64,000 nucleotides of DNA from Macrostomum lignano (taxonomy: Eukaryota). Position numbers and translations under genes: made by a program. Where the stretch lies: assembly GCA_002269645.1 (NCBI GenBank), contig NIVC01001181.1, forward strand, positions 279,387 to 343,386, given 5' to 3'. The notes beneath the pieces are model-generated. The model did not search any database. It was given only the letters and a program-made list of their open reading frames with translations, and was not told the origin of the DNA. Of this stretch, positions 9,389 through 32,592 are shown piece after piece; within the stretch, counting starts at the first letter, position 1; each line of letters opens with the position of its first letter.

Positions 9389-11011
9389 ATGCTTCGACAG
9401 ATTCTGCCGTCGCAACTGACGAGTCTAGCGGACTCCGTTTCTCCCAATCGGACAGCAGCTACAAGAAGGCCATCGCAACTGCCGCGATTCCCGCCGCTCT
9501 CGGGGCCTACGTCCTCTACTACTGGCGACAAGGACGCGACCTCCCTCCCGGTCCTGTAGGCCTGCCTCTCATTGGCCGTCTGCCATGGACCGATCCGAAG
9601 AACTTGCACCTCACGATGCAGAAAGTGGCAGAGAAGTACGGCGACATTACTTCGTTCTACCTTGGCTCGCGCCTGCTCATTGTGCTCAACTCGTACCAGA
9701 TGATGAAGGAGATGCTGGTAGACTACAACTTTGCTGGTAGACCGAGACTGCGTCTGTTCTTACAGCTGACCCGCGACTGCGGCATCATCTTCACGGAAGT
9801 CTGCGAACTCTGCGAGACTTCGGCTTTGCTAGAGCGGAAACTGTCGAGATGGTCGACGATCGACTGGACTCCATCTTCCAGACGCTTGATGAGGCCGCGA
9901 CGTCGGTCACACCGATGGAGGTGCTCGGCACTTTCATTCTCGCCTCCAACTCGATCATCACTGAGATGACACTCGGTCACCGATTTGAGCGAAACGATCC
10001 CGAGTTCTTGAAAGTCAATGCATTGATGAAAAAACTACCTGACGACGGCATAACCGAATCAGCAAGTGTCTCGTTTCCGATCATTGACAGATTGAGTGAG
10101 CTGTTTGGTCTATCAAGCAGCGTTGTTCAGAATCTAGAGTACCTGCACTCGTTCATACGGAAAGGGATCCAACAGCGTGAGAAGATAATGGTGGATGAAA
10201 GTACGGAACCCGAGTGTCTCTACGATGTATATATCCAGGTAAAAACTCGAATTCAGACAGGAGCACAAAAACACAAATTATTTTTTAACAGCTGAAACTT
10301 TAACGATTTGATTGCCACCATGACTACTTATTAGGAAAAGCGCAAGTCTGAGAAGGCTGGCGACTTTGAGACGTTCAAGGATTTCCAGCTCATTCGAGTG
10401 TGCTTCGAGTTCTACCTGGCCGGCACTGACACGACCGCCCGATCGATGGAGTGGCTGCTGCTCTACATGGCCTTCTATCCGGAGGTGCAGGACCGAGTCC
10501 AGAACGAGCTCGACTCCGTAATCGGTCAGTCGAGACGTCCACGGATGCAGGACAGGACAGAACTGCACTACACCAGCGCTGTCATCGACGAGACCTACAG
10601 AAAAGCTTCGCTGGCTGCCATCGGAGTTTTCCATCGCTCAGTGGAAGACGCAACCTTCCACGGCTACCGGATCCCAAGCGATACGATCATCATTCCGAAC
10701 GTGTACGGCGTCCACCACCGAGCCGAGTACTGGGAGAGACCGAACGAGTTCTACCCTGAGCACTTTCTCGACAACAAAGGTCGCTACCGGAGCAGTCCGT
10801 ACCTCATCCCGTTCCTGATTGGTCGGCGCTCTTGCGTTGGCGAGTCTCTGGCGTGAATGGAGATTTTCCTGTTCTTCACGGCCATCATGCAGCGGTACCG
10901 GGTGCGGCCGGAGCTGGAAAGTGCGGCAAGAAGAAGGACGACATTCCGTCTGGTCGTCTTGGAATTTTGCGGATGCCGGGGCGATACCAGTTGATTATGA
11001 GCCGTCGATAG
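9389..11011 (+). pseudogene. Cytochrome P450 (CYP2 clan) pseudogene, copy 1; exons 9389-10238 and 10335-11011
   Basis: Aligns to the intact copy 2. Lesions: 1-bp deletion in the T-run at 9438-9440, 31-bp deletion at 9797/9798 (removes the C-helix WxxxR), CGA>TGA stop at 10854-10856, and a 2-bp insertion near 10929. Exon lengths 850 (=882-32) and 677 (=675+2) match these exactly. GT-AG intron of 96 bp. AGTDTT, ETYR, PEHF and FLIGRRSCVG motifs are retained. Confidence 0.9.
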
Positions 11012-11976
11012 ACCTTGATTGATATTTTTAGAACAAAAGTAGCTTCTGTTGTTTTCATTTGGCCCTGCACATGATAAAAATTACATTTTTACCCAGAAGT
11101 TGCTTAATTATAATCGTTCTTAATATCTCCAAGATATTCCAGTCCTTATATGTATGGTACGTGCACCTGCAAAGCGCTTAGCGAGTGGTTCGCTCAGTTG
11201 GAATAGTAGCTGAATAGCAACTAGCTATACTGTAACACCTATTACTTGATTTACCCTTATCGTTCTAGCGTCTGTCTGCTTTGTGGCCTCGTTGAGTTGT
11301 TTTTGGTCTTGTGATAATCGTGGTCTAAAATTAGCCAAAAGTTCTGAGTAAAACTTTTCATAAGTAACTACGGCTATCAAAAGTTACTTCGAATCGAAAT
11401 CGTTTAATTACACCACTTCCTGTATGCTATTTTAACGTCCAAGAATGGCACATGTTTATAAAACCGATCAGTGAAACCCGTCAGCAGTTTTTACGAGTGC
11501 ATAGGCAAAATATTCTATGCTTCTATCTACTCCGAGCATATGCGCTTATCAGCTACAAAAATATAAAATGCATCACTCGTGAAGTCACTTGTTATTAGTG
11601 TAACAATAACAATAATTAATAGGTACCAAATTTTAAAGACAAAAAAGTTTACTCTACTTTTTTTTAACACTCGTATTTATTTTATTTCACAAAAAGATGT
11701 AAACTGTGATATGACTGGCTAAGATTCTAAGAACATATTCAAATACTGCGATAGCTACAATAAAAAAACTGCTTTCTGGAAAAAGTAGTCTTGAAAAAAA
11801 GAATATAGTGTTCAGTGAAATTTTTCCACTGTGAGAAATAACAACGTAAATTCAATCCAATGTGCTAAGTGTAGCTAAAATTGATGTTTCAAACTGGTCT
11901 CGTCACGTCAGATTTTAAATTGAAAACAATGGATATGTACGCACAGTTCAGAACCAGAACCTGGCGATCAGGAGAC

Positions 11977-13607
11977 CTAACGGCGGTCGAAAATCAGACG
12001 GTATTCCCCTGGAATACGCAAAGATCCCATCCAACCAGATAGGATGTCATCCTTCTTTGCCGCACTCTCCGGGGCCGGCCGCACCCGGTACCTCTGCATG
12101 ATGGCCGTGAAGAACAGGACAATCTCCATTCGCGCCAGAGACTCGCCAACGCAAGAACGCCGACCAATCAGGAACGGGATGAGGTACGGACTGCTCCGGT
12201 AGCGACCTTCGTCGTCGAGAAAGTGCTCAGGGTAGAACTCGTTCGGTCTCTCCCAGTACTCGGCTCGGTGGTGGACGCCGTACACGTTCGGAATGATGAA
12301 AGCATCCGATGGGATCCGGTAGCCGTGGAAATGGGTTTCCTCAACGGCTCGGTGGAACACTCCGATGGCAGCCAGCGAGGCCTTTCTGTAGGTCTCGTCG
12401 ATGACAGCGCTGGTGTAGTGCAGTTCTGTCCTGTCCTGCATCCGTGGACGCCTCGACTGACCGATTACGGAGTCGAGCTCGTTCTGGACTCGGTTCTGCA
12501 CCACCGGATAGAAGGCCATGTAGAGCAGCAGCCATTCTATCGATCGGGCGGTCGTGTCAGTGCCGGCCAGGAAGAACTCAAGGATTACGCGTATGAGCTG
12601 GAACTCCTTGAACGTCTCAAAGTTGCCAGCCTTCTCAGCCTTGCGCTTTTCCTGTGAGAAAGTTAATCAAAGATATTGCTGTTATTTATACGACTATAGA
12701 AATAGTAAAGCCTAAATTCACTCACGTGGATGTAGACATCGCATAGACATTCCGGTTCTGTGCTTTCGTCGACCATCACCTTCTCACGCTGTTGGATCTC
12801 TTTCCGTATGAACGAGTGCAGATATTCAACATCGTGAACGACGCTGCTTGATAGCGGGAACAGTACGATGAATCGTTCAACAGCTGGGAACAAAGCGCTT
12901 GCCGTTTGAACAATGCCCTCTTCAAGTAGTTTCTTGATGAGCTTGTTGACCTTCTGAAACTCGGGATCGTTTCGCTCAAATCGGTGACCGAGTGTCATCT
13001 CAGTGATGATCGAGTTCGAGGCGAGAATGAAAGTGCCGAGCACCTCCATCGGTGTGACCGACGTCGCCGCCTCATCAAGCGTCTGGAAGATGGAGTCCAG
13101 TTGATCGTCGACCATCTCGACAGTTTCCGCTCTAGCAAAGCCGAAGTCTCGCAGAGTTCGCAGACTCAATCGACGATGCTGGCTCCACATGTATCCCTCC
13201 GTGAAGATGATGCCGCAGTCGCGGGTCAGTTTTAAGAACAGACGCAGTCTCGGTCTACCAGCAAAGTTGTAGTCGTCCAGCATCTCCTTCATCATCGGGT
13301 AAGAGTTGAGCACAATGAACAGGCGCGAGCCAAGGTAGAACGAAGTAATGTCGCCGTACTTCTCTGCCACTTTCTGCATCGTGAGGTGCAAGTTCTTCGG
13401 ATCGGTCCATGGCAGACGGCCAATGAGAGGCAGGCCTACAGGACCGGGAGGGAGGTCGCGTCCTTGTCGCCAGTAGTAGAGGACGTAGGCCCCGAGAGCG
13501 GCGGGTATCGCGGCAGTTGCGATGGCCTTCTTGTAGTTGCCGTCCGATTGGGAGAAAACGGAGTCCGCTAGACTCACCAGTTGCGACGGCAGAATCTGGC
13601 GAAGCAT
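11977..13607 (-). CDS. Cytochrome P450, CYP2 clan, copy 2; exons 13607-12726 and 12651-11977; 518 aa
   Basis: N-terminal hydrophobic anchor, PPGP hinge, WSQHR (WxxxR), I-helix AGTDTT, K-helix ETYR, PEHF and heme motif FLIGRRSCVG. Phase-0 GTGAGT...CAG intron of 74 bp. The spliced frame is open. Confidence 0.95.
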
Positions 13608-14675
13608 TTTTGTTTACTTCTTCGCTAGTAAGCATAACACTCCTTCAGGCTTAGGGCTCACAGAAGGGTTTTCTGTTTTGCGAAAGCTCTTTAGCTAGTG
13701 TGTAAATGCTTTTCTTATCAGTTACCCCCATGCTGTTGGGCAGGCGTATACTTTGAGTACATTCTCCTTGTACGGTTAGGGCAGAGTGTACACTGTGACC
13801 GGTGTACACCCTAGTTAATTTTGAACACACAGGCTAGTAGCTCGTACAAGAGGGCTTTGCAGAGTGTGAGGGTAAGGAATGAAAAGAGGATGGCAGGAGG
13901 TACGGTTTGCTGGATTGTTTAGCGTACGTTATTAATTCCAATGGAAAATACCCAGGCCATGGCTGCAGCTATTTAATTATTTTGACAAAAATCAAGCCCG
14001 AGCAAAAAACACCTACACTGCATTGTCGTTTACAGAAAGCCGAAAGAGATGCAAGATGAGAACAAAAAAGTCTTTGCAGAACAGTAGCAAGCAAAAAATA
14101 GAAGTGGCTCATATTTATATGCAAATGCAATATTGCCCTCACCTACAGTTGCATCAAGGCAAGTTAACGCTGCCGCAAGCAACTCCGAAGGTCAAAGATT
14201 ACTCAAACCAATTTACAGGTGGTTCAGACCGATTGTAAACTGGAATAGAGTTAGCTCAATTTAGTTTTGATTTTTTATTTTTCTTCTCAATAATAACTTG
14301 CTAGACTTTATGTTCAACTGTGCAATCGTTAACTGTAGAAGTTTTGAAAAGGTGGGCAAGATAAGCGTGGACATTGCGCAATCTCCTTTTATGCTCTGGT
14401 TCAATATACTTAATCTGCTACAAAGGATCTGGCTAAAAACAAGGTTGTCTATAGACTACTTTTGGAGAATTGGATTTGCTAAAAAGCCATCACATCGCAA
14501 CCTATCAAATCATCAACTGCTTTCTTCACAGTTTCTTGTAACTCTTGACAAAAGAAAGACCAAATGGTTTTATCCAAATAATGTCTTTTTCAAACCCTCA
14601 GCATCTTCTTAAAGGTCAGAAATCTTTTTAGGGAATAGATGTTCCATGCTAACTGTTTCCTTATTCTGCCTGCAA

Positions 14676-14987
<312 letters not shown>

Positions 14988-15651
14988 TCGTGGTGTTGTG
15001 CCTTCTCATTAGTGCACTCATTAGTTCGCGAATCTTTCCAATCAGAAACTGAAGCCTGTTTAAAAGATAAGAAACTGCCTATACCGTTCAGTGTCTATAA
15101 GATTTGGAGGTTACGCGCAAATGCGTCATATGCAGCATTAAAGATGGCTAAGCTGGCTTCAGCACAAACTATTTTTAGACACCCTTTCAACGCAGCTTTA
15201 TCGCACAGAATGAGCCCAGAATGAGCTCGCTCTTCAAGCTTGGAATAATAGCGAATGCAGACTGCAGAGGCAGATTTAGACTCACAGGGCCATACAGCAG
15301 GGTATGAGTTTCAGGGCTAAATTAAAATGCGCATAACCGGTTGCAGATAAAATGCACTATAACAATTAACCTTAGCCTGAGATGCCCTCTACTGTTCGAT
15401 TCGCGTAATGGGTTGGAATAGTGAAACAAATTGCTTAGTCTTAGCTGTAGAACTGCTTTACTGTAGGTATACTGACGCACAGGGTTGCTTGGCATCATGG
15501 ACAACTAAATTAGAAGATCGTTCGGCGGGGTGGAGGCCAGGTTGGGGCAGAGGCCACTCGGACAGTAAATTTATTTGGCCTTTGCGCATAAAAATTGGTC
15601 AGGTGGTTGCTGTGCGATTCAGAAAGCTACTGTACACCCTGTGTGAGCGTG

Positions 15652-16340
15652 GGAGCTGGACAAGCCAGTTGCTGTTGCGGCGAGTGTCGGCCTGGTGGTC
15701 AACACTCAGAAGACCGTCGTGCTCTGCGTGGCGGACGACATCGAGGCTGCGATTTTGTGCCGAGGCGCTAATGGACAGGCGACAGAGCTTCCGCGTTGTC
15801 AGCAGTTCGTCTACCTCGGCGGTCTGGTTCCCGGCGTCCGCGAGGATTTGCGGCGTCGCCGCGGGCTTGCCTGGGCTGCCTTTCGTTCTGTGAGGGCAGT
15901 CCTGCAGTCCGAGGCCTTACCTGACCGCCAAGAGGGCGGCGTTGTTCCAGGCGTTGATCGAGACCGTCCTGCTGTACAAAGCCGAGACCTTGACGCTGAC
16001 GGAGTCGCTCGAGCAACAAGTTGACGCGGCGCCTTCAAGATCGGCTACGAGCGAGTGACCAACGCGGCTTTGTATTGCCGCGACGGCCTAGTCCGTCCAA
16101 GCGACCTGTTGCGCCGACGGCGACTCCAGCTGGCAGGCCACATCATCCGCGCCAAAGTCGTACTGCGCACAGCCGGTGCAGGAGGTGCTGCTGCTAACGC
16201 ATATCGCATAGGCAGGCCCGAACTCATCGACTGCAGCCTGCTGGCTGACGCCGGCGCCCCGGATTCGGCTGGCGGAGTGGCGTTCATTCGCGACCCGGCC
16301 CTGAGGCGCGCCCTGTGACGCTGAACGCGTATTTTGTTGT
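15652..16340 (+). mobile_element. 5'-truncated RTE-like non-LTR retrotransposon with 10-bp TSD
   Basis: Frameshifted RT C-terminus (VGLVVNTQKT...FVYLGG...RRRGLAWAAF...ETVLLY...RRRRLQLAGHIIRA), (TGT)n tail, and direct repeat TGTGAGCGTG at 15642-15651 and 16341-16350. Confidence 0.85.
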
Positions 16341-16934
16341 TGTGAGCGTGTGTAGTGCATGAGTGCGTGCCTGCATACAGTATCGGCGCCCTTGTTTGTG
16401 CTCAGGAGTCACCGGGGAATGAGCAGAATTGCCTCAGAGCTGCCGAAGGCCGCGCCAGAATGATAGCAATTTTCAGGGTTTCCTTCTAGATTCTTATATT
16501 TCTAAAAAGCAAGTCCCTGCAAGAAATCTTTAAGAGAACACAACTGATAAATAGTGCTTTGCAGGTTCTAAAATTCGTAGCCAGACCTGTGTTGTCTCAT
16601 AACTTCAACTCTGAGTGAGTTGAGTAACACAAAATGACGAAACTCTTCTCTAGTCGCTGAGCGCTTACCTGCGTAGAGAACCGAGAAGGTTGTCTAGCAA
16701 AGCTGCGATAGAAAAAGAGACTTGAAAACCTGTTTTAGGTGGGCAGAAGTACAATGCAGCTAATTTTAGATTTACCCTCTAAAAGTTTTAGAGGGCTACA
16801 ACTGGAAGAAGCTCGGACAATCGAAAAAAGAAGAATGGAAAATAACCTGGGTTGCGCGAGCATAAAAGGGGCTGAATTATGCTACTAGCATTCAGTTTCT
16901 ATATAGCTGCTCTTTGCACAAGCCACAAGCCAAA

Positions 16935-18591
16935 ATGGCGTCACTAAGCGGGCTTCTGCCAGGCCCATTGTCTACTAGATCGCTATTGACGAGCTTGTTG
17001 AACCTTGAGAATGACAAAAAATGGCTTTTTCTGACAGCTGTTCCTGCAGCCGCCGCTGCTGGGGCCTATCTATTGAACCGCTGGGTTCGAAACCGCGACC
17101 TCCCCCCTGGCCCCGTCGGTGTCCCAGTGCTCGGCCGAGTGCCTTGGTCTGACATGGACAACATCCACCTGACTATGGCGAAGGAGTGCGAAAGATACGG
17201 CGACATCTGTTCGTTTTACCTTGGCTCGCGACTATTCGTCATCGTGAACTCCTACCCGCTTATGAAGGAGATGCTGGACGACCAAACGTTCGCCGGACGA
17301 CCGCAGATGTCATTTATGCGACGAGTTACGCGCGACTGTGGAATCCTCATCAAAGAAGGCGAGCAGTGGAGCCGGCACCGTCGGTTGAGTCTCAAATCGC
17401 TTCGCGACTCCGGCTTCGCGCGCCTGAAAACGATCGATATGATCGACGACCAGCTGGACATCATCTTCGAGTGCTTCGACAGATTTTCCTCGTCTTGCGC
17501 GGGCTAAAGTGGTGAATAGCTTTCTGCTGGCTTCGAACTCTGTCATCACCGAGATGACGCTCGGCAAAAGGTTTGATAGGAATGATCCGCACTTTCAAAA
17601 GGTGAACTCCAACATCAACGACCTGATTCAACTTCGCCTGTTTCAAAGTGCCCCATTTCTATACAAAGCGGTTGAACTGCTCGTCTCCGTGCTGCCAATG
17701 ACCGATGCGAGAATTGTCAAAGCAGATTTCGTGCACAACTTCATCCAAGAGGAAGTCCGGAAACGCCAGAAGATCATGGAGACGGAGGGAGCTCAACCGC
17801 GATGCCTGTGCGATACGTACCTGCTAGTAAGCTATGACATATAAATTATTAGAATTAAAGTCCAGCAGAATTCTATAATTGAGGCAACTTCAAAAAAACT
17901 TTCTAATCGCTTCCAGGAGAAACGAAAAGCCGAGAAGGCTGGCGACTTTGAGACGTTCAAGGAGTTTCAGATCGTTCGAGTGTGCTTCGAGTTCTTCCTG
18001 GCCGGCACTGACACGACCGCCCGATCGATGGAGTGGCTGCTGCTCTACATGGCCTTCTATCCGGAGGTGCAGGACCGAGTCCAGAACGAGCTCGACTCCG
18101 TAATCGGTCAGTCGAGACGTCCACGGATGCAGGACAGGACAGAACTGCACTACACCAGCGCTGTCATCGACGAGACCTACAGAAAAGCCTCGCTGGTAGC
18201 CTGTGGTCTGTTCCACAGAGCCGTTGAGGAAACCCATTTCCACGGCTACCGGATCCCCAGCGATGCTGTGATCCTTCCGCGGGTGTACGGCGTCCACCAC
18301 CGAGCCGAGTACTGGGAGAGACCGAACGAGTTCTATCCCGAGCACTTCCTCGACAACGAAGGTCGCTACCGGAGCAGTCCGTACCTCATCCCATTCCTGA
18401 TTGGTCGGCGCGCCTGCCCGGGCGAGTCTCTGGCGCGAATGGAGATTTTCCTGTTCTTCACGGCCATCATGCAGCGGTACCGGGTGCGGCCGGAGCCGGA
18501 GTGCGCGGCCCGCAGAGAGGAGATCCTCACCGGTCAGCTCGGAGCGGTGAGAATTCCTGGTGAAAATCGACTCATATTAAGTCGTCGGTAA
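16935..18591 (+). CDS. Cytochrome P450, CYP2 clan, copy 3; exons 16935-17826 and 17917-18591; one frameshift near 17500 (pseudogene or sequence error)
   Basis: All P450 motifs are present (PPGP, WSRHR, AGTDTT, ETYR, FLIGRRACPG). Exon 1 is 892 bp (3n+1) and the frame shifts between FSSSCA and KVVNSFLLAS. GTAAG...CAG intron of 90 bp. Confidence 0.85.
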
Positions 18592-19249
18592 GGCTTTGGT
18601 TTAAGACAGCTTTTGTCAGCGACATTCTAAGCATGTTTTTAAGACAAAATTCAGCTTTAATATCATAGCTTATATTTATTTCAACAGCCTAATCCGTGTA
18701 TAAGTGAAAGATTGACTCCATTGATTTTGTCAGGATGTAGTACTTGAAGTATTTCGGATGGCTCAACACTTTCTTCTTTTGTAGTTATTAGCATGATAAA
18801 TAATAGCGCTGAAAGCAAACTGCGATTTATGCTTAAATAATAATTATAAGCTGTGTTCTCTTCCAGTTTTGAAATTTAGCAATGCGTAAGCCGTGACTCG
18901 ACAGTACTACTTGTTAGCTTAGTAGCTACATTGGTATTTTTTCTACTTTTTTAAATCTATGCAATTTTACATTCCCTTCTATAATAGAGAAATAAGCGCT
19001 TGATATGCTACTCAGCAAGTAGATATGCAATACAACAATTAGAGAAAACTAAATTTAAAGTTGGGTTGCCGAATATCAGTGTATTTTGTTATGTTTCTAA
19101 AAATAGGAGTAAAAAATTAACTAATACGTAATGTAAAGCTAGACAAATTTTCTTGAGAATAAGAGGCCATCCAGGTAATGTAAAGTTTAACGCCAGAATC
19201 AAACTTGAAGTGCAGCTACGGATCAAGCTGTTGCCAATCGATAACGTTT

Positions 19250-19470
19250 CTAGGAACGGGATGTCTCCAGGCGTTTCTAAGAATGGGATGCCTCTGTGTT
19301 TTTAGAAATGGGAAGTCTTGGTGTTTCTAGGATTTGGATGTCTCGGCGTTTCTAGAAATGGGAAGCTTTGGCGTTTCTAGGAATGGGATGTCTCGGTGTT
19401 TCTATGATTGGGATATCGCGGCGTTTCTAGGAATGGGATGTCTGTCTCTGCGTTTCTAAGAATGGGATGT
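19250..19470. repeat. Degenerate ~30-bp minisatellite (GCGTTTCTAGGAATGGGATGTCTC core)
   Basis: About 7 imperfect tandem copies. Confidence 0.8.
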
Positions 19471-20044
19471 CTCGGTCATTCGAGTCATCTGGTTGAAAGT
19501 TTCATGAAGCAGAATCTTAGCAACAATTTTTGTGAAGCTTCTTTGGATAGCTTGTTACACTGCAAGGTCAGTGGACTATTAAAGGAGATGCTTTGTTTCT
19601 TCAGAAAATTTTGTTGAAAACATTTTGCAGACCCATTGTGTCTTGTAGTTTATTAGTGCATACTGTACTTAGAAGTGACACTAATCTAAGCGAACTGATC
19701 GAACAGCTGCACGCGAAAAAATGGGGGTTAAACTAAAATCATTGAATGGCCTTGAAGAATCTCATGCCCTCTGTTTGTACTCTAGCCTTACAAATAATTA
19801 CCTTTAGGGGTCGTTTTTAGCCTCTCGGGACCAGCTTAAGGTCGGAGAAGCGTACTCGAGTACAGGCCTCGGACCATGCAGTGTATTTGAGCGCTCCTAA
19901 ATCTCTCAGCGTCTCCAAGGTATATGTAGCTGCGTACATTACGTAAAATCTCAACCCCCCCCCCCCAAGAAACCTGTGCACACACAGCGCTGCATAAGTT
20001 CGTGGTACGTTGTACATTCGTCAATTGTTTATGCAATATAAAAT

Positions 20045-20056
20045 GCAGATATAAAA
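20045..20056 (+). promoter_or_regulatory. Candidate TATA box of CYP copy 4 (GCAGATATAAAA)
   Basis: About 85 bp upstream of the ATG. The same 12-mer occurs upstream of copy 5. Confidence 0.4.
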
Positions 20057-20135
20057 TTTTCTAAACGTTTAAAAAATAAGACAACAAAAAAACTTTGCCA
20101 GCTGTCAAGAAGACGAATCTAAAACTCAGCTACAG

Positions 20136-21992
20136 ATGGAAGGAGTCATAGAAATGCTACCGAAATCCTTAGCCAGCCTCCTAGGGGATAATTTCTATAC
20201 GGTAGCGGCACCAGCGGCCGCGGGACTTGCCGCGGCGTACATGCTGTACTCTTGGCGACAGGGTCGCGACCTGCCGCCCGGACCCGTAGGCCTGCCCGTG
20301 CTAGGACGGTTGCCATGGATAAGTCGCAACCAGATGCACCGAAGCATGATGAAGATCTGTCAACAGTACGGCGACATCAGTTCGTTTTACCTTGGCTCGC
20401 GACTGGTTATTGTAGTGAACTCGTACCCGCTGATGAAGGAGATGCTGGACAGTCAGATGTTCTCCGGTAGGCCTCAGCTCCGCCTATTCAAGAAGCTGAC
20501 CCGCGGCTGCGGCATCATCTTCACGGAGGGCGACGTCTGGAATCAACAGCGACGCTTAAGTCTGCGCACTCTACGCGACTTCGGCTTCGCTAGAAAGCGG
20601 ACGGTGGAGATGGTAGACGAACAGCTCGATAGCATGTTCAACGGCTTTGACGAGATCGCCGCTCTGTACGAGCCAGTCCAGCTGCTAGAAACCTTCCTAC
20701 TGGCTTCAAACGCCATCGTCGCGGAGATGACGCTTGGACAGAAGTTCGAAGCCGACGATCCAGCTATGAAGCTGGTGAACGCCATTGTCAAGAAGCTGAT
20801 AGAAGATGGCATCATTCAAGGTGTGGAGTTCCTGTTCCCAGCTATGGAACGGCTGGCTGACCTCGTGCCGGCCTCGAGCAGTCTTGTTAGCGACACCGAG
20901 CGCCTGCACGACATGATTCGGGGCCAGATTCGCAAACGCGAAGCGGTGATGAAAGATGAGAGCGTTGAGCCGCAGTGCCTCTGCGATGCCTACATTAAGG
21001 TGAGCTAGTAACATCTCGACCTAACGCAATCAATCGATAAAGTTTTCCTGCAGCGAGATTCTCCCGAAACAGAGCTTATATATAACTACTAATGCTTTTT
21101 TGGAATTCTCAAAGACACATACTTTGATGACACGTTTTGCCCTCTCACAATACTTAGCACAATAGAGAGACCTAACCAGTTACTTTGGATTGCTACAGAA
21201 GTTTTCGTGGTCATTTTGTAAAGAAGAAGACAAAAAAAACAGCCAGGTATTCGGTTGTTTACTCGAGCGCGTGTCATCATGTCACCCCATATTGCTCGGC
21301 TTTGCAACTAATTTCAGGAGAAGCGCCAAGCTGAGAAGGCTGGCGACTTTGAGACGTTCAAAGAGCACCAAATCATCCGAGTGACCATGGAGTTCTTCCT
21401 GGCCGGCACTGACACGACCGCCCGATCGATGGAGTGGCTGCTGCTCTACATGGCCTTCTATCCGGAGGTACAGGACCGAGTCCAGAACGAGCTCGACTCC
21501 GTCGTCGGTCAATCGAGGCGTCCACGGATGCAGGACAGGACAGAACTGCACTACACCAGCGCTGTCATCGACGAGACCTACAGAAAGGCCTCGCTGGTCG
21601 GTACTGGAGTTTTCCATCGCTCAGTGGAAGACGCAACCTTCCACGGCTACCGGATCCCGAGCGATGCGATCATCATCCCACTGGTTTACGGCGTCCACCA
21701 CCGAGCCGAGTACTGGGAGAGACCGAACGAGTTCTACCCTGAGCACTTTCTCGACGACGAAGGTCGCTACCGGAGCAGTCCGTACCTCATCCCGTTCCTG
21801 ATTGGTCGGCGTTCTTGCGTTGGCGAGTCTCTGGCGCGAATGGAGATTTTCCTGTTCTTCACGGCCATCATGCAGCGGTACCGGGTGCGGCCGGAGCCGG
21901 AGTTCGCCGCCCGCAAAGAGGAGATCCTCGCTGGATCGATTGGGGCTTTCGTGTTTCCCGGCGACTATCAAGTCACGATGGACCGGCGCTGA
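20136..21992 (+). CDS. Cytochrome P450, CYP2 clan, copy 4; exons 20136-20999 and 21318-21992; 512 aa
   Basis: PPGP, WNQQR, AGTDTT, ETYR, PEHF and FLIGRRSCVG motifs. Phase-0 GTGAG...CAG intron of 318 bp. The spliced frame is open. Confidence 0.95.
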
Positions 21993-22954
21993 TGCCAGCT
22001 GAATCAGAGCTTGACCATAGTGAAAACTGTCACGGTCTGTCTAAAGAGCAAACTGCTATAGTTTATTCTATCTTTTTATACGGAAGCACATTAGCCGAGT
22101 AACCGATACAATGGTTTTAACTGGCTAAGTATAAAAATCTGAAGAGTAACTTTAGAGCTTACGAGATATTTATAAGAGTTAATTGATAATTGTAATTCAG
22201 TGTATTTTTGTGTAATCGTGTCCTCCCAGACAAAATAGAGATATCTTTTATGCTTTTTTTGTTCTTTAACTTTTAACTCCCTGACAGATAGACATAAAAT
22301 AAATTCAGATCGACGTTTTACAGTCGAAAACTGACACTACAGCCTATGATCATATGGTTCAAAAATGGTAAGTAGCCTACTCTTAGTAGCGCATCGCGTG
22401 CGCTTTCGTTTCGAAGCAAAAGGGTTAGCTATTTCTAATAACCACAAGTATTGCATTAATATTATCTACACAACAGTCTCCTCCTCTATCCGCTGTCTCC
22501 TCATCTATCCGCTGTCTCCTCCTCTATCCGCTGTCTCCTCCTCCTCTCCGCTGTCCTCTTTCTCAACACTCTCCCCACTCCCTCTATCCCTCATATTTAC
22601 TCCTTCAGCTCAAAAACGTTCATTATAAACAACGCTATTCTAATTTCTAGTACTGCGTACTACTTTTCAATCGGATTCTTTCTGTTTGTCCCGCCCCTTC
22701 AGAACTTTCCTTGTTTTTCTGTCTCCCACAAACTCCCCCACCCCTAAACCGACCCAACTTACTTCAGTTCGCCAGTCCAAAAAGTCGCACAGAATGCAGA
22801 ACCGGAAATCCCCCCGGGAGAGAAATGAGGCACAACTTGCAATCGTAGTAGCAATATTTTCGCTTCAAAACTTCTAGTGCACAGAAGAGCCAATTAGCGA
22901 AATAATTTTACCCTCCTAGTTTAGAGTCTTTTTTAATCAGTCTCCAAGTCTCTA

Positions 22955-25575
22955 GACCGATTCAAATACAGACTTAGAAACCGATTCAAATACAGACTGT
23001 AGCGACAGATTCAAATACAGACTTACAGACAGATTCAAATACAGACTGTAGCGATAGATTCAAATACAAACTTAGAGACCGATTCAAATACAGACTTACA
23101 GACAGATTCAAATACAGACTGTAGCGATAGATTCAAATACAGACTTAGAGACCGATTCAAATACAGACTTACAGACAGATTCAAATACAGACTTAGAAAC
23201 CGATTCAAATACAGACTTACAGACAGATTCAAATACAGACTTAGAAACCGATTCAAATACAGACTTAGAGACCGATTCAAATACAGACTGTAGCGACAGA
23301 TTCAAATACAGACTTACAGACAGATTCAAATACAGACTGTAGCGATAGATTCAAATACAGACTTAGAGACCGATTCAAATACAGACTTAGAGACCGATTC
23401 AAATACAGACTTAGAGACTGATTCAAATACAGACTTACAGACAGATTCAAATACAGACTTAGAAACCGATTCAAATACAGACTTAGAGACCGATTCAAAT
23501 ACAGACTGTAGCGACAGATTCAAATACAGACTTAGAGACCGATTCAAATACAGACTTAGTGACCGATTCAAATACAGACTGTAGCGACAGATTCAAATAC
23601 AGACTTACAGACAGAGACAGATTCAAATACAGACTGTAGCGATAGATTCAAATACAGACTGTAGCGATAGATTCAAATACAGACTTAGAGACCGATTCAA
23701 ATACAGACTGTAGCGATAGATTCAAATACAGACTTAGAGACAGATTCAAATACAGACTAAGATACCAATTCAAATACAGACTAAGATACCGATTCAAATA
23801 CAGACTGTAGCGATAGATTCAAATACAGACTTAGAGACCGATTCAAATACAAACTGTAGCGATAGATTCAAATACAGACTTAGAGACCGATTCAAATACA
23901 GACTTAGAGACAGATTCAAATACAGACTATAGCGATAGATTCAAATACAGATATACAGACCGATTCAAATACAGACTTACAGACAGATTCAAATACAGAC
24001 TTAGAGACAGATTCAAATACAGACTTAGAGACCGATTCAAATACAGACTGTAGCGATAGGTTCAAATACAGACTTAGAGACCGATTTAAATACAGACTTA
24101 GAGACCGATTCAAATACAGACTGTAGCGATAGGTTCAAATACAGACTTAGAGACCGATTCAAATACAGACTTAGAGACCGATTCAAATACAGACTTAGAG
24201 ACCGATTCAAATACAGACTGTAGCGATAGGTTCAAATACAGACTTAGAGACCGATTCAAATACAGACTTAGAGACCGATTTAAATACAGACTTAGAAACC
24301 GATTCAAATACAGACTGTAGCGATAGATTCAAATACAGATTTAGAGACAGATTCAAATACAGACTAAGATACCGATTCAAATACAGACTAAGATACCGAT
24401 TCAAATACAAACTGTAGCGATAGATTCAAATACAGACTTAGAGACCGATTCAAATACAGACTTAGAGACCGATTCAAATACAGACTTAGAGACCGATTCA
24501 AATACAGACTGTAGCGATAGATTCAAATACAGACTTAGAGACCGATTCAAATACAGACTTAGAGACCGATTCAAATACAGATTTAGAAACCGATTCAAAT
24601 ACAGACTGTAGCGATAGATTCAAATACAGATTTAGAGACAGATTCAAATACAGACTAAGATACCGATTCAAATACAGACTTACAGACAGATTCAAATACA
24701 GACTAAGATACCGATTCAAATACAAACTGTAGCGATAGATTCAAATACAGACTTAGAGACCGATTCAAATACAGACTTAGAGACCGATTCAAATACAGAC
24801 TTAGAGACCGATTCAAATACAGACTTAGAGACCGATTCAAATACAGACTTAGAGACCGATTCAAATACAGACTTACAGACAGGTTCAAATACAGACTTAG
24901 AGACCGATTCAAATACAGACTTAGAGACAGATTCAAATACAGACTGAGACAGATTCAAATACAGACTTAGAGACCGATTCAAATACAGACTTAGAGACCG
25001 ATTCAAATACAGACTGTAGCGATAGGTTCAAATACAGACTTAGAGACGGATTCAAATACAGATTTAGAGACAGATTCAAATACAGACTGTAGCGATAGAT
25101 TCAAATACAGATATACAGACCGATTCAAATACAGACTTACAGACAGATTCAAATACAGACTTAGAGACAGATTCAAATACAGACTTAGAGACCGATTCAA
25201 ATACAGACTGTAGCGATAGGTTCAAATACAGACTTAGAGACCGATTTAAATACAGACTTAGAGACCGATTCAAATACAGACTGTAGCGATAGGTTCAAAT
25301 ACAGACTTAGAGACCGATTCAAATACAGACTTAGAGACCGATTCAAATACAGACTTAGAGACCGATTCAAATACAGACTGTAGCGATAGGTTCAAATACA
25401 GACTTAGAGACCGATTCAAATACAGACTGTAGCGATATATTCAAATACAGACTTAGAGACCGATTCAAATACAGACTGTAGCGATAGGTTCAAATACAGA
25501 CTTAGAGACCGATTCAAATACAGACTGTAGCGATATATTCAAATACAGACTTAGAGACAGGTTCAAATACAGACT
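22955..25575. repeat. Variant-repeat minisatellite, 24/25-bp units with constant core GATTCAAATACAGAC
   Basis: About 108 units. Tails are TTAGAGACC, TGTAGCGATA, TTACAGACA or TAAGATACC. Confidence 0.95.
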
Positions 25576-26583
25576 TTATTTGAATCAATCGCGAAAACTC
25601 TGTTTGAATCGCGAATAAATTTGCTCTCATTTCATGCCAGAAGAAAGTGTCGTATTTTAAGTGCAAATGCAAATGCAATGCAAATGCAAAAGTGCAAGCT
25701 CTGATTCCGTGCCATTTGCACTAAATAATCTCCCTCATAGCCACAGGCTCCACAGCTCCAAATGCAGAGGTCACCGAGTTCAGAAAAGTGTAGACTAGCT
25801 CTGCCGTAAAAAAGCCCCTAAAAACCACATAAAAGCCCGGCGCAGCTGGTTTCTCTCACCGCAGTAAACAGCTTCCCAGAAGGTGAGAAACACTACAACC
25901 ATTGTTTACTGAGGGCCCGACCTGTAGCACCCGCCCCTCCCCCACCCCAGAGGTCTAAAAACTGATTCTGTACCGGATTTGTATCGGGCGTGACCCTGCA
26001 CCGCTTGCAGTTAGTTAGCTTTCTAGCATGCAGAGAGCAGTGAACTGGCCTTGCGGGGCCGCGTGAGAGACAGAGAATTCAGGGCATACTACGAATGCTT
26101 GGCAGCAGAGTATAATAGGTGTTATGCAGAGAATTAGTGACAGGGGTTTTACCCTGGGTCGTCCCCTTCACCCTCGCCTCTCAATTCACAATGCAGTGCG
26201 GCTTAAGTGCACTAAAGGGTGGGGCATTATTCAGGTCTCAAAACTGTCAACTCTCAAAAATACCTAAATGACAGGTTCGCAATTCTGCAAGCAAACTACA
26301 GCTAGACTCAATGACTCAACACATGTGGACCCTGGAAGGTCAGCGCAACTGAATCCACGGGTCTTCTTCAATGGCTATTTACTTAAAGCCTGTAATTGCA
26401 CCCATATAATTTCTTAGAAAAGTCTTCATACTGGCATGAAAGCTCCTAATTGTAGCTCTAAAACATGTGATATGGTATGAAATGGCAAATTATTTTATTA
26501 TTGATACTAATAAGCACAGATTATAACTATACTCTTACGACAGACGCGGACAAACCCTGCTAATTATCACTTTGTATTTTTAT

Positions 26584-26735
26584 TTAGTGACCAGTGTAAC
26601 TTGGTATCTGGACAATTGAACTCATATTTTAGGCTTAGTGACCAGTGTAACTTGGCATCTGGACAATTGAACTCGTATTTTAGGCTTAGTGACCAGTGTA
26701 ACTTGGCATCTGGACAATTGAACTCGTATTTTAGG
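26584..26735. repeat. 51-bp tandem repeat, 3 copies
   Basis: TTAGTGACCAGTGTAACTTGGCATCTGGACAATTGAACTCGTATTTTAGGC repeated three times. Confidence 0.9.
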
Positions 26736-28300
26736 TCTTTTGACCTCTTGTGTCTGCCGTTCATAAAAACTACTCGCATGTCATTCTGTGTAATTTCATA
26801 TGAATACCAGCTACTCTATCTTGCTTCTTCTATCTCACAAGCTCACACTACACCTCTGCAAGGCGGGGACAGTTAAAAAGACAGCCCTGGATATGTCCAA
26901 GCGTACTTTAATAAAAGCAAGTGCTTTCTAACTAGCTCATTTAAGCCTCTCTGTCTCTCTCTACCTGTCTCTCTCGCTTCGACAAACTAAACAGCCATGG
27001 AATGCGAAAACTATTTCTATTGGCATGGAATTTAGCTTAGCTATTAAACAATACAGCAACCCAAGGTATAAGAGGTGCTGTTGATGACGCTGCAGGCAGC
27101 CGGTGGGTGGAAATAGGTGCACATTCGTTGTAGGTTTTTGTTTTGTTAGTTGTTATTGTTGTGGTTGTTTTTGCTTATGTTGCAGATAGATCTTGGGAAA
27201 ATGTTTCTGCAAGTAGTTACTATAAATCAAGATGGACTATGTTTTAGTACTCCATGACTCAGAGTTCGAGTACGTACAATATTATACTGAAGTATTTAAA
27301 ATGCGCTTGAGGAGTATATAGAGAAGTCTGGGTAAGAAAGAAAGACAGGGAGAGGGAGAGGAAAGAGGAGAGCTGAATCCTTATCGTTCCAGGGTTATTG
27401 ACATGACGCGACTGGCGGAGGGGCGAGCCGAGTTCAAGTGTCTGACAACTGCCCCAAAAGTTCACTTTGCATATCATTTTTAGCCTTTTGCACTTAGGCG
27501 ACTCGTCTGAACCTGTTGCACTTTTGCCTCTCGAACTTATGCACTGCTCAAATTTCCTCCAAGTGCTCAATTCAAGATCATTTTACTTTTGAGACGGGTT
27601 ACCAACATAGATCAGAAATGGAAGACTAGCTAGGGAAGTTGTGAAGCTTGGAAATTGTGATGTCGAGTGTAAATTGTTAGAGTTGTGAAATTTCACAATT
27701 GTGAAAAAATTTAGGCTTAAAAATCTAGGCAAGTTTCTACTGAATCTGCAGGGATTAATAATATTGCGCAGATTTTGTTATAAACAGCTGGTTTTAGAAA
27801 AAGAAAGCCTATGCCTGTAGCAGAAAATGAAAAATGATTAAAAAGTGCGCGCGAACTCGCAGGCGGCCTCTTTCAGGAGGGAACAACCTCCTTTCCACTA
27901 AGGGGGAAGAGTTAGGGCAGGGTGAAGCTCACAGTGAAGTAACGAGGCTCCGGGCTGTGCCGTACGTTTGTACAGCAAAGCGGATTTCGTATATGATATT
28001 ACTCGTACCTTCGGTCAAGCCGTCTGACCTTAAACCTTAAATTAGTAAGCCTACTGGACTGGCTTTCAGTGGTGATGGTGTTGAATGGGATAAATAGGTA
28101 TAAGGTCAAAAAGCCACGAATTCAGGGTCTAGAGACACAAGAATTCTGTTGTCTGTACTAGAGGACGGTATTGGCCTCACACAGCAAGTTATTGCTAGTA
28201 TTCGTTTGGAAATGTTGTGCTTTCTGACGATTTTTCATTGATTTTTATGACAAGCTTCTAGCGGCTTTTTAGCCAAGTCAAGCTCCTAGTCAATTACATG

Positions 28301-30339
28301 TAGTGGCTATTCTAGTAGTCAATTAGTGGCTATTCTAGTAGTCAATTAGTGGCTATTCTAGTAGTCAATTAGTGGCTATTCTAGTAGTCAATTAGTGGCT
28401 TTTCTAGTAGTCAATTAGTGGCTATTCTAGTAGTCAATTAGTGGCTTTTCTAGTAGTCAATTAGTGGCTTTTCTAGTAGTCAATTAGTGGCTTTTCTAGT
28501 AGTCAATTAGTGGCTTTTCTAGTAGTCAATTAGTGGCTTTTCTAGTAGTCATTCAGCGGCTTTTCTAGTAGTCATTTAGTGGCTTTTCTAGTAGTCAATT
28601 AGTGGCTTTTCTAGTAGTCATTCAGTGGCTTTTCTAGTAGTCAATTAGTGGCTTTTCTAGTAGTCAATTAGTGGCTTTTCTAGTAGTCAATTAGTGGCTT
28701 TTCTAGTAGTCATTCAGTGGCTTTTCTAGTAGTCAATTAGTGGCTTTTCTAGTAGTCAATTAGTGGCTTTTCTAGTAGTCATTCAGTGGCTTTTCTAGTA
28801 GTCATTCAGTGGCTTTTCTAGTAGTCAATTAGTGGCTATTCTAGTAGTCAATTAGTGGCTTTTCTAGTAGTCAATTAGTGGCTTTTCTAGTAGTCAATTA
28901 GTGGCTTTTCTAGTAGTCAATTAGTGGCTTTTCTAGTAGTCATTCAGTGGCTTTTCTAGTAGTCAATTAGTGGCTATTCTAGTAGTCAATTAGTGGCTTT
29001 TCTAGTAGTCAATTAGTGGCTTTTCTAGTAGTCAATTAGTGGCTTTTCTAGTAGTCAATTAGTGGCTTTTCTAGTAGTCAATTAGTGGCTTTTCTAGTAG
29101 TCATTCAGTGGCTTTTCTAGTAGTCAATTAGTGGCTTTTCTAGTAGTCAATTAGTGGCTTTTCTAGTAGTCATTCAGTGGCTTTTCTAGTAGTCATTCAG
29201 TGGCTTTTCTAGTAGTCAATTAGTGGCTATTCTAGTAGTCAATTAGTGGCTTTTCTAGTAGTCAATTAGTGGCTTTTCTAGTAGTCAATTAGTGGCTTTT
29301 CTAGTAGTCAATTAGTGGCTTTTCTATTAGTCATTCAGTGGCTTTTCTAGTAGTCAATTAGTGGCTATTCTAGTAGTCAATTAGTGGCTTTTCTAGTAGT
29401 CAATTAGTGGCTTTTCTAGTAGTCAATTAGTGGCTTTTCTAGTAGTCAATTAGTGGCTTTTCTAGTAGTCAATTAGTGGCTTTTCTAGTAGTCATTCAGT
29501 GGCTTTTCTAGTAGTCATTTAGTGGCTTTTCTAGTAGTCATTCAGTGGCTTTTCTAGTAGTCATTCAGTGGCTTTTCTAGTAGTCAATTAGTGGATTTTC
29601 TAGTAGTCAATTAGTGGCTTTTCTAGTAGTCAATTAGTGGCTATTCTAGTAGTCAATTAGTGGCTTTTCTAGTAGTCAATTAGTGGCTTTTCTAGTAGTC
29701 ATTCAGTGGCTTTTCTAGTAGTCATTCAGTGGCTTTTCTAGTAGTCAATTAGTGGCTATTCTAGTAGTCAATTAGTGGCTTTTCTAGTAGTCATTCAGTG
29801 GCTTTTCTAGTAGTCATTTAGTGGCTTTTCTAGTAGTCAATTAGTGGCTTTTCTAGTAGTCATTCAGTGGCTTTTCTAGTAGTCAATTAGTGGCTTTTCT
29901 AGTAGTCAATTAGTGGCTTTTCTAGTAGTCAATTAGTGGCTTTTCTAGTAGTCATTCAGTGGCTTTTCTAGTAGTCAATTAGTGGCTTTTCTAGTAGTCA
30001 TTCAGTGGCTTTTCTAGTAGTCATTCAGTGGCTTTTCTAGTAGTCATTTAGTGGCTTTTCTAGTAGTCAATTAGTGGCTTTTCTAGTAGTCATTCAGTGG
30101 CTTTTCTAGTAGTCAATTAGTGGCTTTTCTAGTAGTCAATTAGTGGCTTTTCTAGTAGTCAATTAGTGGCTTTTCTAGTAGTCATTCAGTGGCTTTTCTA
30201 GTAGTCAATTAGTGGCTTTTCTAGTAGTCATTCAGTGGCTTTTCTAGTAGTCATTCAGTGGCTTTTCTAGTAGTCATTTAGTGGCTTTTCTAGTAGTCAA
30301 TTAGTGGCTTTTCTAGTAGTCATTTAGTGGCTTTTCTAG
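28301..30339. repeat. 23-bp minisatellite (GTGGCTTTTCTAGTAGTCAATTA)n
   Basis: About 89 copies with CAATTAG/CATTCAG/CATTTAG and CTTTT/CTATT variants. Confidence 0.95.
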
Positions 30340-30671
30340 GGGACAATGAGCGGTTTTTAGCAAAAGTGATCCAGACTGAACTCTAGTTGCCGTACCGTCT
30401 CATTTAAATGGAAACAAATTATTTAAGAAACTAAGATCACGCGATTAAACATATTGACTGTTTTTTACACTACTCCGCTGCAGTCGCACTCTACAAGGTT
30501 ACATTGTCTAGTCTAATTCAGAATCGTTTTGGGAAACGAATTAATTTCAGCATAGATTCTTCCATTTTTCTTGTCTGCGGTATTTGCGCCCTGAGCTTGT
30601 GTGAATAAACTTGACGAACCCATGCAGCAGCATTGCGCAAATACTCGCTGCGTAAGCGCGGTTAGACAGAC

Positions 30672-30683
30672 GCAGATATAAAA
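30672..30683 (+). promoter_or_regulatory. Candidate TATA box of CYP copy 5 (GCAGATATAAAA)
   Basis: About 230 bp upstream of the ATG and identical to the 12-mer upstream of copy 4. Confidence 0.35.
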
Positions 30684-30907
30684 ATAGCACCCTGTCGAGA
30701 GCTCTCTTTGGCAAACACAATTGGCTAAAAAGCTAAGGCACAACTGGCCACCCGCAGACACACACCGGTTGGCTGGGAGTCCCCCCCCCCCTTAACCCGA
30801 GGACTATCTAATGAAGGACAACCGCCGCTCCGCTAGACAGTAACCGCTCCCTTTACGCCTTCGTCTGTTCGCCATCTAATAAGACAGCCTACATAAGCCA
30901 AACTGCA

Positions 30908-32592
30908 ATGCAACCGCATCGCCAACTGTTCGCCGACTGGCTGCACTGGACGCTGGCGGTCACCGGCTTGGCTTCGAGTTCGACGTCCAGCAGTTCGACA
31001 ATGTGCTCGGCAGCTACGGCGATGGTAGCCGTGGCAGCCGCCGCCGCCGCCTACGCAGCCTACTGCAGCTGGAGGCGAGCTCGCGACCTGCCGCCCGGGC
31101 CTGTCGGGGTGCCGCTGCTGGGGCGACTGCCCTGGGCCGACGCCCTGTGCCTGCACCTGACGATGCAGAAGGAATGCCAGAAGTACGGCGACTTGTGCTC
31201 GTTCTATCTGGGCGGCCGACTGTTTGTGGTAGTGAACTCCTATCCGCTGATGAAGGAGATGCTGGACGACCCGGTGTTTGCGGGCAGGCCAAGACTGCGC
31301 CTGTTTGAGAAGATGACCAGGAACTGTGGCATATTTCTAGTCGAAGGCAAAGTCTGGTGCCATCAGAGACGACTGAGTTTGAGGACGCTGCGTGAGATCG
31401 GGTTCTCCGGCTCCAAGGCGGTTGGCATGATCGAGGATCAGCTGGAGCCGCTGCTACAGCAGCTGGACGAGGCAGCGGAGGCTGCGCAGCCGGTGAAAAC
31501 TCTGGACACATTTCTGCTGGCCGTAAATTCCGTCATCACCGAGATGACGCTTGGCAGGCGGTTTCACCGCGACGATCCCGACTTCAAGAAGGTGACCAGC
31601 CTGATCGCGGCCACGCTGGAGTCGGGCATCTCCGAGACCGCCTGCTTTCTGTTCCCGGCCGCCGAGAAGCTGCTGGACATCATACCGATGTCTACGCGGG
31701 TGTTTCGCGATGTCGAATACCTGAACGAGTTCTTTCGCCAGCAGATCCGACTGCGGGAGGCAGCGATGCCGGCTGGGTCCGATGTGCAGCCCACCTGCCT
31801 GTGCGATGCGTACATCCAGGTGAGACCGCTGGAAGAATTTAGAATTTGGTCCGAAGACCAGCACTAGTATAAAAGTAAACCAATTAGTGCTAAACCATTT
31901 CGTAAATTTTACAACAGGAGAAGCGCAAGGCTGAGAAGGCTGGCGACTTTGAGACGTTCAAGGAGTTCCAGCTCATCCGAGTGTGCTTCGAGTTCTACCT
32001 GGCCGGCACTGACACGACCGCCCGATCGATGGAGTGGCTGCTGCTCTACATGGCCTTCTATCCGGAGGTGCAGGACCGAGTCCAGAACGAGCTCGACTCC
32101 ATCGTCGGTCAATCGAGGCGTCCACGGATGCAGGACAGGACAGAACTGCACTACACCAGCGCTGTCATCGACGAGACCTACAGAAAAGCTTCGCTGGCTG
32201 CCATCGGAGTTTTCCATCGCTCAGTGGAAGACGCAACCTTCCACGGCTACCGGATCCCGAGCGACGCGATCATCATCCCACTGGTTTACGGCGTCCACCA
32301 CCGAGCCGAGTACTGGGAGAGACCGAACGAGTTCTACCCTGAGCACTTTCTCGACGACGAAGGTCGCTACCGGAGCAGTCCGTACCTCATCCCGTTCCTG
32401 ATTGGTCGGCGTTCTTGCGTTGGCGAGTCTCTGGCGCGAATGGAGATTGTCCTGTTCTTCACGGCCATCATGCAGCGGTACCGGGTGCGGCCGGCCCCGG
32501 AGAGTGCGGCAAAGAAGGACGACATCCTCAGGGGACACATGGGATCACTGCGAGTGCCCGGAGATTATCGGCTGATTTTCAGTCGTAGATAA
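30908..32592 (+). CDS. Cytochrome P450, CYP2 clan, copy 5; exons 30908-31819 and 31918-32592; up to 528 aa
   Basis: PPGP, WCHQR, AGTDTT, ETYR, PEHF and FLIGRRSCVG motifs. Phase-0 GTGAG...CAG intron of 98 bp. The start may be a later Met (MCSAATAM). Confidence 0.95.

Follow-up and report, generated by a model that had tools for sequence, protein, structure and literature searches.

How can five genes of one cluster be saturated with differences in their first exon, nearly alike in their second, and related to each other differently in almost every block of that second exon? The question is raised by a 64,000-nucleotide stretch of the Macrostomum lignano contig NIVC01001181.1 (assembly GCA_002269645.1, Mlig_3_7), the whole of which is called the window here, and which contains five paralogous two-exon genes of the CYP2 clan of cytochromes P450 (c1 to c5) between 9.4 and 32.6 kb. 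A locus retrieved from this contig matched window positions 1977–24142 at 100% identity. The first-pass annotation of this DNA had proposed that the exon-2 variants sort into ever-changing groups of paralogs, and that short conversion tracts are exchanged among all copies. The interval it gave, 10335–32592, has as its exact limits the opening base of c1 exon 2 and the final base of c5 exon 2, and all the peptide and nucleotide motifs and groupings it listed were found in the copies named. Our analysis indicates that the cluster is very probably an old tandem family of five CYP2-clan P450s, in which exon 2 is under recurrent germline non-allelic (interlocus) gene conversion.

The spliced c5 protein matches the Pfam p450 profile (PF00067) with an E-value of 1.8e-94, covering profile positions 1–453 of 462. 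The P450 signatures AGTDTT (I-helix), ETYR (K-helix ExxR) and the heme-loop PFLIGRRSCVGE are found in the exon-2 translations, and in the alignment they fall on the matching motifs of CYP2R1. The closest matches of the c5 protein are M. lignano P450s, followed outside the genus by CYP2G/2F/2C/2Y/2L/2J/2K proteins at 30–36% identity, and among solved structures CYP2R1 comes nearest, followed by CYP2B4. Because this identity is below 40%, no CYP family name is assignable to the cluster proteins. A homolog search with exon 2 alone returned just distant fish P450s and missed the close matches.

Each gene has a single phase-0 intron of 74–318 nt. The genes c4 and c5 are intact, as is c2, which is inverted. 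As a pseudogene, c1 has lost 31 bp of exon 1 near 9798, and its exon 2 carries the stop codon and the insertion located in Table 1. Compared with another copy of the cluster (NIVC01004602.1; copy C below), the stop codon of c1 is found only in the window (CGA in copy C), while the 2-bp insertion is common to both. The frameshift of c3, a 2-bp GC deletion, is also confined to the window, and c3 exon 1 is open in copy C (L005 5580–6491); either c3 became a pseudogene in a single chromosome set, or the deletion is an indel of the assembly.

The contrast between the two exons is large. Exon 1 shows 41–58% protein identity and 55–64% nucleotide identity between paralogs, the c1/c2 pair excepted, and exon 2 shows 84–91% protein identity. 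Among the intact genes, the synonymous divergence (dS; Nei-Gojobori) is 1.7–2.7 in exon 1, which is saturated, and 0.06–0.21 in exon-2 codons 28–195, and it is saturated again across the last 30 codons of exon 2. The introns and flanks are unalignable, and the high-identity homology opens 2–4 nt ahead of the splice acceptor. In similarity to the other copies, exon 2 of the pseudogene c1 equals those of the intact genes. This silent-site pattern means that purifying selection on the protein is insufficient as an explanation, and sequence exchange can produce such a homogenisation.

Within exon 2 (positions are given as nt of the exon), homogenisation is uneven. Two framework segments are nearly identical in all copies, with a low proportion of synonymous differences (pS), and in the second of them exact runs of 125–189 nt are common to different paralogs. 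Between them lies an island at substrate recognition site 5 (SRS5), made up of AAIG, VACG or VGTG, then SVEDATF or AVEETHF, then IIPNVY, IIPLVY or ILPRVY; here pS between cassette types reaches 0.6–0.7, the level of exon 1. The C-terminal tail is diverged as well, and a third diverged island occupies nt 43–90, the I-helix flank before AGTDTT. By the CYP2R1 alignment and standard P450 landmarks, the islands are placed at the SRS4 flank, SRS5 and the C-terminal beta-hairpin region SRS6, so the SRS4/SRS5/SRS6 labels of the first-pass annotation are reasonable. Judged from these divergences, the island cassettes look old rather than fast-evolving. The mosaic as read from the alignment is two-layered, with a near-fully homogenised framework and old, near-saturated cassettes which are moved around themselves.

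In the exon-2 alignment of the five copies, 152 columns are variable and 68 are parsimony-informative. A five-taxon tree accommodates just two partitions of the 2|3 type, whereas all ten possible ones are present, eight of them inside the unambiguous nt 1–585, and no single tree fits, as had been proposed. Along the exon, the partition is 123|45 at nt 186–195, 125|34 at nt 281–288, 145|23 at nt 294–351 (15 sites), 123|45 and 12|345 at nt 360–369, 13|245 at nt 439 and 495, and 134|25 at nt 532–579, and a second 125|34 block is found at nt 586–608. The pairwise homoplasy index (PHI) test, which had been suggested as a check, was run in our own implementation (refined incompatibility of neighbouring informative sites, with permutation of the site order). 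Incompatibility is clustered: for the five exon-2 copies z is about -8 and 0 of 10000 permutations are as low, a result that stands when the core is taken by itself; with third codon positions only, 40 of 10000 permutations reach so low a value, and with ten sequences 0 of 10000. The four-gamete minimum is 17 breakpoints in exon 2, and nine of the ten pairs reach p<0.05 when their longest identical run is tested by GENECONV-style permutation. These tests confirm that the block-wise conflicting partitions are not due to chance.

A limited homogenisation is also found outside exon 2. The genes c1 and c2 lie inverted to each other, tail to tail (9386–9953 versus 13611–13040). Their exon-1 sequences are 93–99% identical over the initial ~570 nt, beginning 3–4 nt before the ATG, and 67–83% identical over the final ~300 nt, and the intron and the upstream DNA are unalignable. 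The high identity at the start of exon 1 indicates that conversion is not strictly confined to exon 2.

More recent events can be seen when the copies of the cluster are compared. Worms of the DV1 line are neopolyploid, with three homeologous chromosome sets that differ by ~1.1% in coding sequence and 2.2% overall (PMC10733133). Taking the window as copy A, copy C carries c1–c5, copies B (NIVC01002926.1) and D (NIVC01002927.1) are almost the same as C, and copy E (NIVC01001527.1) carries a partial c3 plus c4 and c5; all of them retain the gene order, the unique introns and the flanks. The variation described here is found within a single inbred line, among chromosome copies that are homeologous or duplicated. 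Between A and C, 32 of 4422 nt differ in exon 1 (0.72%) and 80 of 3377 nt in exon 2 (2.4%; Fisher p 2e-9). For 54 of the 86 exon-2 substitutions between cluster copies in the multiple alignment, both states are found in other paralogs, and such alternative states matching other paralogs indicate that exchange continued recently.

The clearest bounds come from c5 and c1. The c5 genes of A and of C and E differ at ten sites, six of which (nt 439, 442, 495, 532, 578 and 579) form a run where the c5 of the window matches c2. The c5 of the window is identical to the c2 of the window over nt 370–558, and the c2/c5 tract is sized at 141–244 nt. In C and E, c5 is identical to the c1 of the window over nt 370–519, the DNKG motif included. 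With an inverted c2 as partner, 20 kb away from c5, neither orientation nor distance inside the cluster prevents exchange. In c1, the SRS5 tract of the window reads AAIG, SVEDATF and IIPNVY, which are c5/c2 types, and that of copy C reads VACGL, AVEETHF and ILP, which are c3 types; both versions occur in protein models of the ML2 assembly (P0136 and P0132). In addition, c3 varies between cluster copies in the sub-block nt 309–321.

Two claims of the first-pass annotation have to be adjusted here. Exchange by tracts stands, but a size of "tens to about 100 bp" is too short, as the best-bounded recent tracts measure ~86–250 nt (nt 439–579 within the identical nt 370–558 for c2/c5, and nt 281–366 for c1). 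Combinatorial SRS alleles were suggested as a possible outcome too, and differing block combinations do exist among cluster copies, but new SRS5 combinations were found only in the pseudogene c1 and in c3.

At nt 439 (window positions 10773, 12213, 18355, 21756 and 32356), which decides between D and N in LDDEG, LDNEG and LDNKG, the state flips between A and C in c1, c2, c3 and c5. This lone site in fully identical flanks is either an exchange hot spot or a product of unreliable short-read polishing. The ML2 models of c2 (P0127, P0128 and P0130) combine a window-like exon 1 with a copy-C-like exon 2; they could represent the haplotype of a third chromosome set or a chimeric consensus. The exact c5 and c2 protein sequences of the window were absent from the protein collection queried.

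An outgroup gives a similar picture. A single transcript (L004; Logan contig from run SRR28338165, species not known) is closest to c4 (69.7% amino acid identity) and c2 (68%) in exon 1, against 63% between c4 and c2, a modest orthology signal. Its exon-2 core is 80–81% identical to every lignano copy, while the lignano copies are 90–97% identical to each other. Such a pattern would be the classical signature of concerted evolution, drawn here from one sequence. When the outgroup protein was used as the query of a homolog search, other Macrostomum species yielded no additional relatives. Taken together, the dS contrast, the PHI and run tests, this outgroup and the other cluster copies support the proposal that exchange takes place among all copies, regardless of orientation and distance.

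Table 1. Positions of the five P450 genes and of the exon-2 segments in the window (nt, position within exon 2)
Feature	Position	Strand	Remarks
c1 exon 1	9389–10238	+	tblastn match in two frames; alignment to c2; c2 homology begins at ATG
c1 exon 2	10335–11011	+	in-frame TGA 10854–10856; 2-bp insertion near 10931
c2 exon 2	11977–12651	-	inverted copy, intact gene; annotated protein P0002
c2 exon 1	12726–13607	-	
c3 exon 1	16914–17823	+	2-bp deletion near 17503
c3 exon 2	17917–18591	+	
c4 exon 1	20136–20999	+	annotated protein P0131 equals the spliced model exactly
c4 exon 2	21318–21992	+	
c5 exon 1	30908–31819	+	
c5 exon 2	31918–32592	+	
Homogenised framework 1	32008–32187 (c5; nt 91–270)	+	I-helix AGTDTT to ExxR; mean pairwise identity 94–99%, mean pS 0.077
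SRS5 island	32188–32286 (c5; nt 271–369)	+	directly after ExxR by CYP2R1 alignment
Homogenised framework 2	32287–32502 (c5; nt 370–585)	+	meander, heme-binding Cys loop, L helix; mean pS 0.082
Diverged C-terminal tail including SRS6	32503–32592 (c5; nt 586–675)	+	mean identity 58–66%; outside the homogenised zone
Recent tract, c5 of the window	32356–32496 (nt 439–579)	+	c2 state at each of the six sites that differ from the other two c5 copies
c2 partner of the c5 tract	12073–12213 (nt 439–579)	-	inverted, ~20 kb from c5
c1 SRS5 tract	10615–10700 (nt 281–366)	+	29 sites differ between A and C

A process of the following kind would account for these patterns. A break in one exon 2 may be repaired by homologous recombination with the exon 2 of another paralog as template, where the choice of template would be independent of orientation and would reach over at least 22 kb, and roughly 100–250 bp would be copied without crossover. 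Strand invasion probably fails in the introns, the flanks, exon 1 and the final ~90 bp of coding sequence, which have diverged too far, and this would limit conversion to ~500 bp of exon 2. Conversion would then keep the framework near-identical in all copies, silent sites and the pseudogene c1 included. The islands may owe their persistence to selection against conversions that would wipe out functional differences, or to a density of mismatches that blocks heteroduplex formation, and occasionally a whole island would be carried along into another paralog. Where tracts from different donors overlap, partitions would conflict from block to block. What we infer from the patterns is how the repair works, which way each event went and what part selection plays at the islands. 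For non-allelic conversion in human, a mean tract of ~250 bp was estimated, and the cluster tracts of ~86–250 nt agree with it.

The alternative that has to be taken most seriously at this locus is that the chimeric exons are false, produced by misplaced short reads in polishing (Pilon) or by a mixed Canu consensus. For Mlig_3_7, PacBio reads were assembled by Canu, and Pilon polishing then drew on Illumina reads mapped by Bowtie2 and on RNA-seq reads mapped by STAR (PMC5730564); in this genome of three near-identical chromosome sets, ~93% of read pairs have more than one mapping position (PMC10733133). The framework is identical among paralogs over 120–190 nt, which exceeds many short reads, and the flips of nt 439 in 4 of 5 paralogs would fit such an error. 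The concern, which the first-pass annotation had raised itself as what could overturn its claim, is therefore relevant, yet it cannot explain the multi-site blocks: the main blocks hold 6–30 differences in 20–140 nt, where reads from the wrong paralog would not outmap the right ones. Moreover, the same paralog-specific mosaics of c2, c4 and c5 are found on the separately assembled contigs of copies B, C, D and E, both c1 versions recur in the differently assembled ML2 models (built from the same PacBio reads, hence of partial independence), and polishing is unable to create such different dS values in exon 1 and in the exon-2 core. We consider an artefact quite improbable as the explanation of the mosaic. 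It is extremely unlikely that there was no exchange at all and that strong purifying selection and codon bias on exon 2 left parallel substitutions at few free sites. The C-terminal half of P450s is generally more conserved, and the GC content at third codon positions (GC3) is high (0.77), but silent sites are near-invariant in the framework (pS 0.08) and saturated in exon 1 even at conserved peptide motifs, the pseudogene c1 resembles the other copies no less than the intact genes do, the conflicting sites are clustered in blocks with PHI significant even on third positions, and the differences between copies form runs that match one donor.

Other routes of exchange than short non-crossover tracts between genes were considered as well. 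Unequal crossing-over, or a recent duplication of exon 2 only, would leave hybrid genes; the former is known in tandem arrays, and with c1 and c2 the cluster contains duplicates arranged tail to tail. However, the nearest relative of each copy changes again and again over 600 bp (17 breakpoints or more) while gene order, introns and flanks are kept, and a crossover with the inverted c2 would invert the interval rather than yield a hybrid, which makes this route very improbable. Repair templated by ribonucleic acid (RNA), that is by spliced transcripts or their complementary DNA, draws on the observation that the homology edges lie at the edges of the messenger RNA, 2–4 nt before the exon-2 acceptor and 3–4 nt before the ATG of c1 and c2. 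As the main mechanism it is extremely unlikely, as the exon 1–exon 2 junction is crossed by no tract (the end of exon 1 in c1/c2 is just 67–83% identical, with higher values on both sides), the coding 3' end and the 3' untranslated region are not homogenised, and the same boundaries are explained by a non-coding divergence past the limit of strand invasion.

Several points weigh against recurrent interlocus conversion as set out above. All the evidence for it is pattern-based, and it comes from a Canu/PacBio assembly polished by Pilon, in which isolated sites (nt 201, 439, 495 and 532) are possibly mis-assigned; ML2 repeats several haplotypes but was built from the same PacBio reads and is not fully independent, and no independent short-read transcript assemblies of c5 and c2 were found. 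The outgroup is a sole sequence. As regards selected cassettes, positive selection on the islands was not detected, with ratios of nonsynonymous to synonymous differences (pN/pS) of 0.31 at SRS5 and 0.46 at the SRS4 flank, both <1. A clear signature of GC-biased conversion is also absent, with a GC3 of 0.77 in the core versus 0.66–0.79 in exon 1, so that the core exceeds exon 1 by little. In a stronger form of the conversion reading, the cluster would be a germline device for shuffling cassettes, in which ancient SRS4/SRS5/SRS6 cassettes, partly stored in pseudogenes (c1, and c3 in this copy), are moved into expressed P450s across paralogs and the three homeologous sets, under selection that favours diversity; we regard this form as improbable.

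Gene conversion in clustered P450 and detoxification genes has long been established, and this cluster is a further example. Non-allelic conversion is also known between CYP2D6 and CYP2D7, between CYP21A2 and CYP21A1P, and between rat CYP2B1 and 2B2. In the human CYP2A/B/F cluster, CYP2A13 is a conversion hot-spot, where alleles of single-nucleotide polymorphisms match the sequences of donor paralogs (PMC3161012). The M. lignano cluster resembles the vertebrate CYP2 clusters in its tandem xenobiotic-type P450s, in its short tracts, including those from non-functional copies, and in polymorphic states that equal those of a paralog. It differs from them in that all five copies participate, one of the partners being inverted, in that conversion affects part of one exon while the other exon is saturated, and in that the host is a neopolyploid flatworm, where the compared "alleles" are homeologous chromosome copies.

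Divergence peaks inside converted duplicates, like pseudogene donors, are textbook material from the red/green opsins (exon 5), RHCE/RHD and the major histocompatibility complex (MHC) (PMC3924837). As in opsin exon 5, RHCE/RHD and the GOT1 paralogs of Tigriopus, low divergence is combined here with narrow peaks at functional residues, namely at the SRS4 flank and SRS5. Unlike those peaks, the present one has a pN/pS of 0.31, so that selection is not demonstrated, and whole cassettes move between paralogs. As in MHC, R-gene and immunoglobulin families, a pseudogene shares recent tracts with functional genes (DNKG is found in c1 of the window and in c5 of C and E), and few cassette types are reused combinatorially; in contrast to those families, there are just five copies, with no sign of balancing selection, directionality, somatic events or dedicated machinery. 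The tandem HMA4 copies of Arabidopsis halleri show a similar patchwork of converted and unconverted segments, but in another gene family and kingdom, and the HMA4 duplicates are young, whereas those of M. lignano are old with a core that was kept young. Compared with programmed somatic cassette systems (chicken immunoglobulin, trypanosome variant surface glycoprotein), exchanges occur here among all copies and are fixed in the assembled chromosome copies; nothing in the window sequence points to programmed somatic diversification, for which no dedicated test was made. What sets the M. lignano cluster apart is that five genes take part, that dS differs more than ten-fold between parts of a two-exon gene, that SRS5 cassettes are mobile, and that three homeologous sets record recent events. 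Among the papers found in the literature library searched, none describes such conversion in Macrostomum.

The public gene models are faulty across the cluster, for example L007 2045–13302 on NIVC01001527.1, P0129, P0132 and P0136, and UniProt models based on ML2 merge two or three cluster genes, one of them containing an antisense translation. P0135, a candidate c4–c5 hybrid gene, was rejected, as the annotation splices c4 to c5 exon 2 out of frame over an intact 9-kb spacer. Long open frames run antisense or in the +1 frame to exon 2 at 12223–12657 (+), 17890–18345 (-) and 31949–32401 (+); they are most likely by-products of GC-rich codon usage that were spread with the homogenised exon 2. 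The spacer between c4 and c5 consists largely of minisatellites, at 22954–25576 (24-nt unit, ~108 copies) and 28301–30339 (23-nt unit, ~89 copies), and more than a dozen further arrays as well as (AGAC)n, (AGAT)n and (CTGT)n microsatellites are found at 14.7 kb and 33–60 kb. Beyond c1, a gene for a WW-domain protein is present in other cluster copies (L005 20886–21631), which maps outside the window start. Beyond c5, there is a minus-strand gene of 525 residues without Pfam match (L001 14282–21685), at ~35–42 kb in the window.

The cluster is a clean and quantifiable case of exon-limited concerted evolution in a detoxification gene cluster of a lophotrochozoan. Flatworm P450 trees built from the C-terminal half are misleading, and orthology has to be assigned from exon 1. 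Likewise, exon 2 is unusable for paralog-specific probes, RNA interference, quantitative PCR and guide RNAs, and short reads are unassignable there, in a species which is increasingly a model for toxicology and regeneration. If the cassettes were indeed shuffled by a germline device of the kind described above, this would imply MHC-like selection for diversity of the substrate range, and worms would differ in their detoxification repertoire. The three homeologous sets provide an internal clock, by which conversion has tripled the exon-2 divergence between sets since their separation, and the cluster could serve to measure rates of non-allelic conversion after polyploidisation.

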